Of a DNA stretch of 64,000 bases, positions 4,268-63,260 are shown one piece after another. Under the pieces are notes generated by a model, which saw only the letters and a list, made by a program, of their open reading frames with translations, was not told the origin of the DNA and did not search any database. A program made the position numbers and the translations under genes. Position 1 is the first letter of the stretch, and each line of letters opens with the position of its first letter. The stretch comes from Lepidodermella squamata (Eukaryota > Animalia > Gastrotricha), in the NCBI GenBank assembly GCA_047495785.1, contig JBLDXI010000001.1, positions 4,650,001-4,714,000 of the forward strand. Direction: 5' to 3'.

Positions 4268-4633
4268 ATGCGACACTGCCTGATTTTCACTTCAATTTCA
4301 CTCTACATCCAAGTATCATGTGCAGCTCTAGCTTTTTTGTCAGATCTTAACGACGATGCACTCGCGGCTGAGGCACTGCCTCCTCCTAATCACAGTGCAG
4401 CGATGTTATGGAGTAGGTTGTCGATTATCAACAAGGCCATGCGAACAAAAGTTTTTAATTCAGATGCTGACGCGTTGAGAAAAATCGGCGAAGAGCAGAA
4501 GCGACAGCGCCAGAAACGGCTGAAGGCGGCATCTCATCAGCATAAAAAGAGCAAACAACAGGCTTTACGGCGGGGAAAATCTCTTCATCGCAGAGGCACG
4601 GTCATTCTCAAAGGCTCTCGACTCGCAGGATGA
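4268..4633 (+). CDS. Secreted precursor with acidic pro-region and strongly cationic C-terminal peptide (~104 aa if intron 4413-4463 is spliced)
   Basis: Signal-peptide-like MRHCLIFTSISLYIQVSCAA; LAFLSDLNDDALAAEA resembles the LAFLSD/LGFLDD segment of the four-Cys family; in-frame 51-nt gtaggt...ttcag intron candidate; K/R/H/Q-rich tail ending in Gly. Confidence 0.6.
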   Translation: MRHCLIFTSISLYIQVSCAALAFLSDLNDDALAAEALPPPNHSAAMLWSRLSIINKAMRTKVFNSDADALRKIGEEQKRQRQKRLKAASHQHKKSKQQALRRGKSLHRRGTVILKGSRLAG

Positions 4634-6640
4634 GTCAATAGGAATCAGCTAATGTGTGATCCGCTTTGAAATTTAGTTGTTAGTCTGAATGAAATTCGAA
4701 CTAGCCATGAAATAGCTGAAATAGTTGACGGGTTGGTTTGTGGTTTAGTCACGCACCACATCGCCCGTGCTATATTGTATAATTCACTATAGTTTCACGT
4801 TTGACGAATTCTTTTATAGTGAAGATAAGCAATAAAAATTTTGAAAATATCTGACTTCCGAAATATTACGAAATTGTTGGTATCTTCACATTCCTCGATC
4901 AGTGCTCAACACTCTCCAGTGCCGAATACACTGACGTTATGTTCCAAAAATTTAGATCGAATGTGTTATCAAGGAAGTTTCTTTGGCGCATTGCCGGCTG
5001 CCAACGATATGTACGTCATTATCGGTGAATGTGATAAAGTTAAGTTTAAAATTGGTGAATGTGAATCACAAAACCGTTTGTGATCAGGGTTCAGAAACTA
5101 CCGGTATTTAGAAATAAAACTACCGGTAATACCAATAACTACCGTTAACTACCGGGTATTTACCGTTTTATCGGTATTTTTATTTTCCGAAGCCTTCATC
5201 TCAACATTTAATACAATTAAGTTCAATCAAGAGAAGCAGTAAACAAAGATTCATCATCGGCTTCATCAATCTCGGCTAAAGCAAGTAACTCTTCATCATT
5301 GCAATTCCTATATTTCCTATATTTCAATAGGAAGGAAATTGTGGTCAAATAATCGCCCATTCCTGATTTCTTATATGTTTAATAGGTCAAGTCTGTTCGA
5401 AAAACTAGTGGGAACAATTAGCGAACATATTAATTTCAAATATTTCAAAATTTCAAGGGTGACATTATAAATACCCGGGCTGACATTATAAACACAATTT
5501 ATTTTTCCTCGAATAAGTAATGTCTTTTCGATGACGGAACAATGAACCACGCCTCTTGCCACCACGAACAGGGGCACAACTTTCACTGCCTAATATTCAG
5601 CTTCGATAACTGGAAATTTAGCTTCGGGTCAAAGGACCATAATAGGAACAATGGAAACTCTGCCGCGATTTTGACACCGCTCGCGCTTCGCCATAGAGAT
5701 CAGATTAACCTGATTAATCTAATCTCTATGCTCTTCGCATGCTTGTGTGACTTGTAACCCACAACTGCCTCCTCGAATAGAGCTGTCTTTTTCGCCGAAC
5801 TCAGGTTACTCAACAGGCCTAGTTGCCCCTGCCTATCCGATGCCTCATACTCCGTAGCTATAACCAATCTTCGGCGACGGCCGGGCTTGAGATATCGTTC
5901 TAACTGCTAGAGGAACAGAATGATGCCGCGGGTCGATGGCTACAATCCTTAGTTCGTGGGCCTAAGCCAACGCATTGCAACATGTGGTTTTCTTCGCTCT
6001 GTAGGAAATGTCTTTATAACGGCGGAATGGGTCACCTCAGGCTTCCACGTCGCCAGTCGCACAACCTCAAGCAAAGTCGCGAACTTTCCATCAAAGCTGC
6101 TGAATATCCTCTGAAAATGTCTTTTAAGCGACGGAAAATGGCAAAATTGAAACCAAGACCCCACATTAACCCATTTAGGCGATAAAATGCGATAAATTAA
6201 TACACACGAACCATCAATAGCTAATTTGATGTTTGAAGGTGCTCTATCGATGACTAGCAAACATCAGGTTGACAGCTCAAGAAAATGTTGTCTAAAAACT
6301 TGTGAGCACAAGAAGATTTAAAGCTCGGGTCGTAAGCGACAGATCAGCCATGTGGTATCCGATAAGGGCGATTAATATCAACAGATTCCCGGGTATTTAC
6401 CGTACCATCTTCGATTTTTGGTATTTTTGACATGCCAAAGTGACCCCACTCACCCCAGTTGACGATGCGTAATCTCGCGAGCTTGCATTTGACCTTGTTT
6501 AATAACTTCTGTTAACGCAGCGTGTTGTTAAATAGAGCGTGCTGTACAACTCGCAACACCGTTCAAGCTTTCACGCAATACAAAAGATTCTATGTTTGGC
6601 GACATTTCAGCAGGTGACAAATAAGCAATGTAGCCTCACT

Positions 6641-6708
6641 TGTGATCATGTGATCACTATGTGATCACTAATGTGATCACTATGTGATCACTAATGTGAT
6701 CACTATGA
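6641..6708. repeat. Minisatellite of palindromic tgtgatcacta(a) units
   Basis: About 6 tandem copies of tgtgatca(cta) visible. Confidence 0.85.
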
Positions 6709-60522: not shown

Positions 60523-61677
60523 TTAGATATAACCAGAGTTAGAAGCAACGTCTAGTGCATAACCATTTACCGCGAGAAACATCGCCGAAGCCAAAACAGC
60601 GAAGATAGCGTCGATAATGCGAAAATACCGAATCCGAATTTTCCCTCGGATTGTAACTCTCTGGCTTAGCCTCCTCGGGAAAATGCTGATGAGACCACAT
60701 AACACAAGGGAATAAATCGTCAAAGTCCAAGAGAAAAATATTCCTAGGGCAGTGTAGGTTGAAATGAACATTCTTTGTGGTTTTTCCGGGACATGGCTCA
60801 GAATGTTGTTCTGCAAAAATGTCCGAGCAAGCATCAGTGTCATGCTCACCATAGGCCGATCAGGCAAATTTGCGTCGATGAATAGGGAGGCTAAACTCAG
60901 ACTATCAAGCAGGACGCACGGAAGAAAAATGTTGACGACATAAAATTCCGGGGAGCGTCTAAATTTGAAGGAAGAATTTGCCGAGCTTCGATTTCCAAGC
61001 ATGTCCACCGTGCCAATCACAGAGCCAGTGCCTTGGAGGAACCAGCCTGTTTTTTTTGTATTGATAAACGTCGGCTTCACATCTAAATTCACTGTTGAGA
61101 AGGCGACAGCGTTGGCGAATTCTTGCATGGTAAACTCGATGAGGCATGTTTGTTCATCGAATGGAAAATTCGCGAAATTCAGGTTGCATAGCGACGAAAA
61201 TACGCCGTATCGCTGCCACGTGAACTCAAGCGTGTTTTTCTTGAGATTCTTCATGAAAAGTCGGCTGTTGAACCCAGAATTCATGCTGTAGTCGTCGAAT
61301 GTGTTCTTATGGTTGAGACTTGGCTTCCAAAAGTAGAACGGGTCCAGGGATACCGTCTTTTGCCTAGGCCAGTAGTAATTCTCGCAATTCACAGTCCAAG
61401 AAACTCGAAGAGATCCTGAGAAAGCGAAAACCTCTGTGATATCGTTGATCTCATGAAGATATTCAGCTTGGATGAAGACTGCGACTTGGGTTTGGTTGCA
61501 GATGGCTGTAGTAGCCGATCCGCCTTCAATGCATGTTGGTGAGTAGGTTTCAGGCGAAACGTTAGAACAATTAGCAATGATTTCAACCATTTGCTGCTGA
61601 ACCATGTCCGTTAGTATTTGACTATCCGTTAATACAGGCATAAGTACGAGAAACAACTTGATATCGCAAGAGATCAT
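60523..61677 (-). CDS. Intronless orphan Cys-loop ligand-gated ion channel subunit, close paralogue of 55617-56771
   Basis: Identical Cys-loop CNLNFANFPFDEQTC, same topology, near-colinear protein sequence. Confidence 0.9.
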   Translation of the reverse strand: MISCDIKLFLVLMPVLTDSQILTDMVQQQMVEIIANCSNVSPETYSPTCIEGGSATTAICNQTQVAVFIQAEYLHEINDITEVFAFSGSLRVSWTVNCENYYWPRQKTVSLDPFYFWKPSLNHKNTFDDYSMNSGFNSRLFMKNLKKNTLEFTWQRYGVFSSLCNLNFANFPFDEQTCLIEFTMQEFANAVAFSTVNLDVKPTFINTKKTGWFLQGTGSVIGTVDMLGNRSSANSSFKFRRSPEFYVVNIFLPCVLLDSLSLASLFIDANLPDRPMVSMTLMLARTFLQNNILSHVPEKPQRMFISTYTALGIFFSWTLTIYSLVLCGLISIFPRRLSQRVTIRGKIRIRYFRIIDAIFAVLASAMFLAVNGYALDVASNSGYI

Positions 61678-62685
61678 TGTCCTTAATATGAAAAACAGGC
61701 AGCAGAATACAGCACTGATGAGCAGATGTACGATATTTGAAGGCTAAATCTCAGTCGAAGCAATGGTAGATCATTTGCTAAAACGATTCTAAATTTTCGA
61801 GAGAGAATTGCTCAGTGACGCAATCCATTTACAATAATCGATTCAGCGCCCGTATAGCAGTGTTATAATCTTGCATTACTAATTCTGCAATTTTTTCGTG
61901 AACACAGGAAACGAGAAGCTTACGCATGTGAAATGTTCCAGAAAAATCATTTTTCTTGATTTTGTTCCAGTAAATTTTCATAATTCGTGATGCAAGATCA
62001 AAATGTTGCTATGAGCACAATTGATTTGCAATACTTACCTTGAAACGACTCATCTCATGGGAAATCACGGTTGAAAGCGATTCAATCCTTCTTTTTCAGA
62101 AAAGTCACTAAAATTAATGACTATAACATGCAAACAAATTTAACCGGTTACCAGTATAGGATTTAGCGAAATAAAAAAGATGGGAAACAAATTATTTTAT
62201 CCAGCTAGGTATACCTAATACTTTCATTTATTCTCTCTTGGCTACGGACGAATTTGGGCTTTTTAATGGCTGACACTATTTCATTCCGCCATTAGATTAA
62301 ATAATTAATAACTTCAGTTTTTACGTCAACATTATGAATTGTGATTCATCGTCCCCGAATACTGAATAATATGGGTCAATTTTCTAGCGATGTTGCTATT
62401 GGTAGCAGGAGAATCACTAGAGGCTGTACTCTGAGATGGGGATCCTGTTCAATCACAGTACGGCGCATAGAGCGAAGTAGGAACGCAGAACTCAGAGCGT
62501 ATAGATAGCAGTATCGGCATAAGGGCCCCTCCTTTGGTCTTTGAATGGGCTTTGAATGGAAAGACATCACCAATAAACATCCAATAAAATTAACGCTGAA
62601 ATCGATTGGATTTGTCATTTCTTCACGTTTTATTCAGGGCATTTCAGTGCATCAAGTTATTACAACTCCGTCCTACATCAAATGT

Positions 62686-63260
62686 TCAGCGCCTGCGACC
62701 GCATTTCGCAGTTTGTTTCTTAGCAGCAAATACATCTTTCGGGGATTCAGGACCGCAATGCTCTGCAATAAAGTAGGGCCGATGTTCCGCTCTTTCACGC
62801 AAGCAGTCGTGTCGCTTCAACTAAAAAAAACAAAGAAAATAATGAAGTTTTGAATTCTCAAGAAAGCAAAACGATTAATGGAGTGATTTCTCATTTCTCC
62901 CAGCGATATTTTTCATGGTCATTTGGATGGAAAACTCATGTATAGCGTGTAGCTTAGCCCCTCACCCCAGTCCTCTGATACGAATCCATCAAAATAATCC
63001 CTCGAATCCTAAGAACCTCCACGATTCAGCTAGTAGGGGGTAGGGGGTCAACTTACCGCGCAGTCACAAATAGATCGACAAAGGCCCCGTGTTAGATTGT
63101 CGAGAGCTTTCACTGCCATACCAGCCAGTTCATCTCTCTCAGCGTTATCAGCAAAAAGTTGCTTCACGTCAGCGATTCTCAAGCGATCGCGTTCGGTTGG
63201 TCTACAAATCGCACTATCTAACAAAACGCAAGCAAAAATAGCTGCCGCGAGGAAGTTCAT
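62686..63260 (-). CDS. Four-Cys secreted family member with extra Cys pair, 112 aa (exons 63260-63057, 62820-62686)
   Basis: Signal peptide; ALDNLTRGLCRSICDCA|LKRHDCLRERAEHRPYFIAEHCGPESPKDVFAAKKQTAKCGRRR*; gtaagt..ttttag intron at the family-conserved position. Confidence 0.85.

Follow-up and report, generated by a model that had tools for sequence, protein, structure and literature searches.

Gene content of the locus

A stretch of 64,000 nucleotides from the gastrotrich Lepidodermella squamata (assembly GCA_047495785.1, contig JBLDXI010000001.1, positions 4,650,001 to 4,714,000; hereafter the window) carries a dense series of genes for exported proteins. A preliminary description, made from the sequence alone, had counted about 22 secreted products among some 26 genes between positions 4268 and 63260 of the window, and had read them as the toolkit of a venom or defence gland cell. 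We modelled the genes using lists of open reading frames (ORFs), enumeration of GT..AG introns, a signal-peptide heuristic, Pfam searches and complementary DNA (cDNA) contigs. This yielded 25 to 27 genes in the same range, 20 to 22 of which encode a product with an export signal and without a membrane span, in agreement with the earlier count; 20 of these signal-bearing, span-free models were rated firm or plausible. Introns across the window are tiny, mostly 52-57 nt. Four non-secreted genes, for a cytochrome P450, a SET/TPR-type protein and two Cys-loop channel-like proteins, are interspersed among the others. Neither a tRNA, nor an Rfam family, nor a notable tandem repeat was found in the window. 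Bare positions below refer to the window (Table 1); positions with a contig prefix refer to the 121.2 Mb assembly of 151 contigs in which the genome searches were made, the window being C1:4650001-4714000.

Table 1. Modelled genes and related features of the window
Feature	Position	Strand	Remarks
4-Cys-like relic, no signal peptide, just outside the range 4268-63260	3790..3969	-	local family profile, E 2e-4
4-Cys A, 140 aa, long form, extra N-terminal 2-Cys domain	7685..8159	+	intron 8039-8090
partial 4-Cys B	8754..9050	-	A-like signal peptide and N-terminal domain; E 3e-10; helical C-terminal half not found
4-Cys D, 107 aa	15872..16249	-	intron 15974-16027
4-Cys E, 107 aa	18706..19082	-	intron 18808-18860
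4-Cys F, 108 aa	21289..21669	+	intron 21508-21561
4-Cys G, 140 aa, long form	26836..27315	+	intron 27187-27243
CUB-trypsin protease 1	27489..30283	-	signal peptide, CUB domains, S1 domain with SAAHC / DLAI / GDSGGP
knottin-like K1, 61 aa, C-x6-C-x5-CC-x3-C-x6-C	30762..31000	-	intron 30796-30848
SET/TPR-type protein, not secreted	31943..34021	+	single exon, no signal peptide; Pfam SET E 0.004, below cut-off
knottin-like K2, 64 aa	34649..34898	+	intron 34810-34864
knottin-like K3, 59 aa	35408..35640	+	intron 35557-35609; cDNA joint 35556>35610, GT..AG
4-Cys H, 100 aa	36236..36593	+	intron 36461-36515; weak cDNA cover
4-Cys I, 101 aa, no intron	37230..37535	+	cDNA contig cover; all-alpha predicted model
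CXCXC-repeat secreted protein, 461 aa, orphan	38410..39896	+	intron 38974-39074, cDNA-confirmed
11-Cys secreted protein, 146 aa, orphan	40642..41142	+	intron 40717-40776, cDNA-confirmed
cytochrome P450, not secreted	41702..43345	+	N-terminal membrane anchor, FGLGKRSCVG haem motif, Pfam
possible RFamide-like precursor	43629..44292	-	one RRGNRPDTFYRFGR site; 2 exons, one short intron
CUB-CUB-trypsin protease 2	45099..47410	-	GR/IVGG activation site, intact triad
CUB-CUB-trypsin protease 3, tandem paralogue of protease 2	48713..50807	-	79-83% identity in S1 domain
i-type lysozyme (destabilase), minus-strand copy	51560..53163	-	56 bits; Cys-rich CBM14-like exon; catalytic Glu and Asp kept
i-type lysozyme paralogue, plus-strand copy, 255 aa model	53311..54490	+	79.5 bits; Thr for catalytic Glu
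intronless Cys-loop channel-like gene 1, membrane protein	55617..56771	-	Pfam Neur_chan
PAN/apple-like secreted protein	58741..59089	+	Pfam below cut-off
intronless Cys-loop channel-like gene 2	60523..61677	-	84% identical to gene 1
4-Cys J, 110 aa	62692..63260	-	intron 62821-63056

A four-cysteine family without database relatives

Eight complete members (A, D, E, F, G, H, I and J) and one partial member (B) belong to a four-cysteine (4-Cys) family. The spacing C-x3-C-x8-C-x16-C is invariant in all eight complete members, which have in common a signal peptide and an amphipathic 'L-x-D-x-x-L ... A-L-x-x-L-T' stretch; the mature proteins measure 80-120 residues. In seven of the eight, a phase-0 intron lies three codons past the C-x3-C pair (member I is intronless), and its length is 52-57 nt except in J, where it reaches 236 nt. 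Two further ORFs, at 4268-4633 and 11833-12120, were considered as hidden members and ruled out by a local hidden Markov model of the family. The first of them had been called a cationic peptide in the preliminary description, a designation that our searches did not bear out, as it matched neither a Pfam family nor the 4-Cys profile.

The 4-Cys profile found no homologue among 1.84 billion representative proteins, where three spurious multi-stretch matches were the only hits, and public assemblies gave no record of the exact sequence of member I. An AlphaFold2 model of member I was all-alpha, with a predicted local distance difference test score of 69.5, and in Foldseek no PDB entry matched this model at E <= 0.001. 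Look-alikes at >= 0.9 were likewise lacking in the ESM Atlas for the 4-Cys, CXCXC-repeat and 11-Cys proteins. As judged from these comparisons the 4-Cys family is an orphan, and the model predicts a fold that is probably all-helical.

Knottin-like peptides and single secreted genes

Knottin-like genes were indeed present, although three rather than the two previously counted emerged from the spliced models. K1-K3 have a signal peptide and a C-C-CC-C-C framework with loops compatible with an inhibitor cystine knot, and in all three genes the intron falls at the same place, inside CCS/Q (slash, intron position).

The CXCXC-repeat and 11-Cys secreted proteins of the earlier account were both recovered, each with one intron confirmed by cDNA. 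Word-based homologue searches with the two proteins were blank, and for the 11-Cys protein the ESM Atlas offered a weak lead towards EB/EGF/Dumpy. Both genes have few paralogues, which lie on other contigs. Two tandem copies of the 11-Cys gene, with 92% and 73% identity, were seen on a small contig (C57:161955-167058); the more similar one is possibly an allelic haplotig.

The putative RFamide-like precursor contains a single dibasic-flanked RRGNRPDTFYRFGR unit behind a weak N-terminal hydrophobic stretch (heuristic score 2.41), and it matched no Pfam family. A secreted gene resembling the PAN/apple type also lies where a PAN protein had been reported; the Pfam match itself (19.6 bits, E 8e-4) fell short of the cut-off of 21.4, and the relation is a resemblance only.

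The presence of these small proteins raised the possibility that the Cys-rich families (4-Cys, knottin-like and RFamide-like) are signalling peptides or prohormones, mixed at this locus with digestive enzymes, with secretion as the sole common theme. The dibasic-flanked RF-Gly site in one gene is consistent with this, as are the strict cysteine spacing and the strong purifying selection on the mature parts (see below). However, the 4-Cys and knottin precursors have no dibasic sites round a short core and no amidation signal, and a mature 4-Cys protein of 80-120 residues would be large for a neuropeptide. We consider such a signalling role for the small proteins as a whole unlikely.

Proteases and lysozymes

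All three CUB-proteases that had been reported were recovered as CUB-CUB-trypsin genes with intact triads (Pfam Trypsin, E 4e-48; CUB, E 7e-24). The His, Asp and Ser residues lie in AAHC, DLAL/DLTL/DLAI and GDSGGP motifs, respectively, and the zymogen site GR/IVGG (slash, activation point) was seen in proteases 2 and 3.

Two i-type lysozyme genes are arranged head-to-head; about 150 bp separate their start codons (53163 on the minus and 53311 on the plus strand). Both scored far above the cut-off of the destabilase family (Pfam PF05497, 26.2 bits) and aligned to leech destabilase (PDB 8bbu), our structure reference. They differ from the leech protein in their architecture, since in both a Cys-rich module of CBM14-like type and then a mucin-like linker of Thr, Ser and Pro separate the signal peptide from the lysozyme domain. 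Two chitin-binding lysozymes had been described here; the lysozymes themselves are confirmed by Pfam, while chitin binding is suggested by cysteine spacing only. The spliced model of the module shows a C..G..W-N-N.....C motif with CBM14-like spacing, and the separate exon pieces had no Pfam match.

When aligned to 8bbu, the minus-strand lysozyme retains both catalytic residues of the muramidase site, Glu and Asp. In the plus-strand copy these are replaced by Thr and Glu, respectively, and CGAWRM stands where 8bbu has CGPYQI. Because of the residues at its two catalytic positions the plus-strand protein may not be a muramidase, and it may represent a non-muramidase or purely binding derivative. 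A relative about 500 kb from the window, at C1:4194891-4196066 on the minus strand, consists of three destabilase domains fused in one 392-codon open frame, with a signal-peptide exon upstream; a 4-Cys gene on the opposite strand ends about 100 bp from the 3' end of this frame.

Transcription

Evidence of transcription came from one whole-animal sequencing run of 2015, the contigs of which were mapped on a 6 kb segment (35301-41300). Exons were covered, intergenic DNA had zero depth, GT..AG joints fell exactly at the predicted introns, and one loose end read as a SMART-type cDNA adaptor. From the exon-only cover, the joints and the adaptor end we concluded that the run is cDNA. All five genes of the segment were found to be transcribed (K3, 4-Cys H, weakly, 4-Cys I, the CXCXC-repeat gene and the 11-Cys gene), and splicing was confirmed for three of them (K3, CXCXC-repeat and 11-Cys). 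The contig cover thus shows that these five genes are real and expressed; as the data are contigs, expression levels cannot be ranked from them. A search turned up no tissue or single-cell expression study for gastrotrichs.

A DNA run of 2024, filed under another organism code, tiles the whole of the same segment, from which it differs by about 2-3% and by small indels. Its source is a strain that has diverged or a cryptic species, and the order of the genes is unchanged.

Density of secreted genes

Background density was estimated from 170 kb of the same genome, drawn at random as 17 pieces of 10 kb, using the signal-peptide heuristic. The window contains 26 strict signal-like ORFs. The sample yielded 8.3 per 64 kb and Markov-shuffled versions of the window itself 3.3, and a Mann-Whitney test on 10-kb pieces gave p = 0.001. 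Counting by hand, we found about 24 signal-bearing genes here against about 3 expected per 59 kb (from about 9 in the 170-kb sample, several of which were membrane proteins), a density about 7 times that of the random sample. At the level of genes, the window is well above the sampled background of this genome.

Copies within a family are not independent, and for this reason we also counted families. Nine signal-bearing families lie in the window, with 2.8 expected in 59 kb (Poisson p = 0.002), an excess which predicts about 5 such windows by chance in 121 Mb. Most of the gene-density excess is due to tandem copies, and the excess by family is modest. Arrays of secreted genes are a common feature of this genome, and density by itself is no evidence for a functional toolkit; what is needed is a count by family set against a genome-wide baseline.

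Distribution of the families in the genome

At E <= 0.001 the 4-Cys profile matched the genome in at least 31 places, of which about 20 lie on C1:4.600-4.776 Mb. Other arrays were found at C4 0.643-0.677 and 1.019-1.027 Mb and at C20 1.954-1.965 Mb, and a single gene at C1:4.1945 Mb. The knottin subfamily of the window is confined to C1:4.611-4.686 Mb, with four copies at 4.611-4.619 Mb in addition to the three described above. Destabilase domains gave 16 matches, nine of them on C1 (at 4.195 and 4.70-4.78 Mb) and the others on C12, C29, C36 and C42. Taken together, these maps place the window inside a domain of about 180 kb (C1:4.60-4.78 Mb) that is rich in 4-Cys, knottin and lysozyme genes. 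The co-location of unrelated secreted families, as previously claimed, is therefore real: it exceeds the sampled background, and the enrichment extends past the window. Proteases 2 and 3 form a local pair; other CUB-trypsin arrays occur at C1:0.16 and 0.44 Mb and elsewhere, and near these no 4-Cys, knottin or lysozyme matches were found.

Outside the domain the families of the window were not found together, save for 4-Cys and destabilase genes. These stand tail-to-tail, about 100-450 bp apart, at C1:4194534/4194972 and C1:4775944/4776595, which hints at some real linkage between the two families. One explanation for the repeated adjacency would be that 4-Cys proteins are partners of the i-type lysozymes, as modulators, inhibitors or carriers. 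Both families have their main concentration in one and the same part of C1, and by a rough estimate the chance of an isolated pair within 1 kb is about 0.005. Against this, only two of the 31 or more 4-Cys genes are so placed, and the lysozymes of the window have no 4-Cys gene closer than 8 kb. The lysozymes of the two pairs are mutual nearest relatives, but their 4-Cys partners are not (37% identity to each other versus 43-50% to other members), and the pairs may or may not descend from a duplicated two-gene module. A partnership of this kind seems very improbable to us.

Tests for a common regulation and for toxin-like evolution

The preliminary description had read the genes as a gland-cell toolkit, possibly directed against chitin-bearing prey or pathogens; in full, this would mean a venom or defence set expressed together in one cell type, and brought or kept together for the sake of co-regulation. 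Several of the above observations speak for this proposal, namely the high density of signal-bearing genes from at least eight unrelated families, the recurrence of three families together over about 180 kb, the 4-Cys gene adjoining a lysozyme gene at two other places, and the transcription of five out of five genes in the 6 kb that were mapped. To these may be added TATA-like boxes 40-80 bp upstream of the ATG in several genes, which are a generic feature.

Promoters were searched in the 200 bp upstream of 20 secreted genes, using exact 6-8-mers and 8-mers with one mismatch. Enriched words were exclusively AT-rich and TATA-like (ATTTAA / AAATTTAA), ATTTAA being present in 13 of the 20 genes and in 17% of background pieces. 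No specific motif crossed the families in these regions, the best one-mismatch word (p 6e-5) failing over 3443 tests, a result that argues against the toolkit.

The age of the duplicates and the selection acting on them were estimated from synonymous (dS) and nonsynonymous (dN) divergence. The closest paralogue pairs had dS values of 0.56-1.4, and the rest were saturated; saturation also limits the selection test for the knottins. Values of dN/dS were 0.21 between 4-Cys D and E and 0.18-0.24 between proteases 2 and 3; the pair of channel genes gave 0.11. Within the D/E pair the ratio was 0.60 in the signal peptide and 0.15 in the mature part. With dS from 0.56 to saturation and dN/dS of 0.11-0.24, these are old duplicates under purifying selection, with no arms race of the toxin type, and a signal peptide evolving faster than the mature part is the reverse of the classic toxin pattern. 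Moreover, a Pfam search of ORFs and exon pieces (the spliced knottin peptides were not among them) returned no toxin family, but only CUB, Trypsin, Destabilase and a weak PAN match.

Other observations also stand against the toolkit. The same families occur elsewhere in separate arrays (C4 and C20 for 4-Cys; C1:0.16 and 0.44 Mb for the proteases; C12, C36 and C42 for destabilase), P450, SET/TPR and channel genes are interspersed among the secreted ones, and about 5 windows with such a family-level excess would arise by chance in the genome. L. squamata is a bacterivorous, free-living, microphagous gastrotrich, and to our knowledge no venom apparatus is known in gastrotrichs. The absence of a cross-family motif, the separation of the families elsewhere, the old and purified paralogues and the intervening non-secreted genes led us to regard the idea of a single gland-cell venom or defence toolkit as unsupported and improbable.

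A probable domain of duplicated families for exported proteins

These data are best explained, with a probability that we put at about 0.6, by the window being part of a domain of about 180 kb in which families of exported proteins were multiplied by old local duplication and then kept, with no demonstrated multi-family functional unit. Local duplication would long ago have amplified the 4-Cys family (9-10 copies here), the knottin-like genes (three), the CUB-CUB-trypsin genes (three) and the lysozyme pair, leaving single secreted genes and four ordinary non-secreted genes between the amplified families. Each product would enter the secretory pathway by way of its own N-terminal signal peptide. 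Co-location would then reflect the history of duplication together with the general habit of this genome of forming arrays of secreted-protein genes, and we infer a lack of co-regulation across the families.

As to function, the enzymes would most likely digest or kill bacteria. The lysozyme with Glu and Asp is a predicted muramidase, the proteases would perform trypsin-like cleavage after activation at the R/IVGG site, and the small Cys-rich proteins are candidates for antimicrobial or signalling roles. A part for the lysozymes and proteases in defence or digestion is plausible, and the likeliest roles overall are probably bacterial digestion, antimicrobial defence and perhaps signalling.

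Several points weigh against this reading of the locus. The roles in digestion and defence are suggested by family names only. The baseline of 17 pieces relies on a crude signal-peptide heuristic, and nine families in 59 kb are still about 3 times the sampled expectation. The two tail-to-tail pairs of 4-Cys and destabilase genes point to a possible true linkage of these two families. Finally, the missing shared motif is weak evidence against co-regulation, since the 200 bp searched upstream were not placed by true transcription starts.

On a more far-reaching reading, C1:4.60-4.78 Mb would be a true multi-family secretome island. Its families and orphans would all be made by one gut or pharyngeal gland cell type, as a mixture that kills and digests bacteria and in which 4-Cys proteins and lysozymes work side by side. 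Such an island would be an animal counterpart of fungal effector clusters; we hold it to be improbable.

Comparison with known clusters

The domain of duplicated families that we favour resembles, in part, several known kinds of locus. The nlp/cnc and lysozyme clusters of Caenorhabditis elegans and the Bomanin 55C cluster of Drosophila usually hold one family per locus, and their genes are co-induced. They are similar to the window in consisting of small, often Cys-rich or orphan signal-peptide genes that are locally multiplied and gene-dense, beside lysozymes or proteases. In contrast, at least eight families are interleaved here, and the paralogues are old and under purifying selection.

Co-regulated secreted effectors are known from the effector clusters of Ustilago maydis and from the gland effectors of plant-parasitic nematodes, which have the DOG-box promoter. 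Unrelated secreted orphan proteins standing side by side are the common feature, whereas in the window a shared promoter box was sought and not found, and the animal is a free-living microphagous species, not a pathogen. Venom genes of snakes, spiders, centipedes and cnidarians normally form separate single-family arrays with a fast-evolving mature peptide behind a conserved signal. The likeness with the window lies in knottin-like peptides, S1 proteases and CUB and PAN modules, all of which recur in venoms, and in tandem duplication, by which venom families usually expand; here, however, the signal peptide of the D/E pair evolves faster than the mature part, and no toxin family was matched.

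What is new at this locus is the orphan families, not the kind of locus. Gastrotrichs are almost unexplored at the molecular level, and the region provides checked models for three families without database relatives (4-Cys, CXCXC-repeat and 11-Cys), some of them cDNA-confirmed, in addition to documenting knottin-like peptides and unusual modular lysozymes. The genes of the window may serve as starting points for studying how a microscopic bacterivore digests and defends itself.

Channel-like genes and minor observations

The two channel-like genes belong to a family of intronless genes encoding about 385 amino acids, with a canonical C-x13-C loop and an FPFD motif, that is hugely expanded in the genome: more than 100 copies were scored among 2150 first-look candidates, including loci at C28:1.47-1.90 Mb, C33:0.12-0.57 Mb and C16:0.18-0.23 Mb. 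A word-based search of 5.8 billion proteins with the channel-like protein gave no match at E <= 1e-5. The family could be a lineage-specific, chemoreceptor-like expansion. The arrays on C28 and C33 are mirror images of each other, with identical scores gene for gene; probably they are haplotigs that the assembly left uncollapsed, or else a large inverted duplication of very recent date.

Beyond the range that carries the secreted genes, ORFs on the minus strand at 41-1621 resemble a nuclear hormone receptor, in which positions 991-1317 contain a zf-C4-like stretch (CDACKKFF...CRLKKC) and positions 41-367 may encode the ligand-binding part. An isolated open frame of 84 codons on the plus strand (59870-60121, '...ILFVDSSSSMD'), flanked by the PAN-like gene and a channel gene, is possibly part of a transposase. 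Also noted were two arrays, at 10449-10548 and 10721-10818 and about 170 bp apart, each built of a 14-15-nt unit; their units are apparently reverse complements (AAGAGCAACGAAAT versus ATTGCTCTTATGTCG), and the arrays may be the ends of a small foldback element or one resembling a miniature inverted-repeat transposable element.

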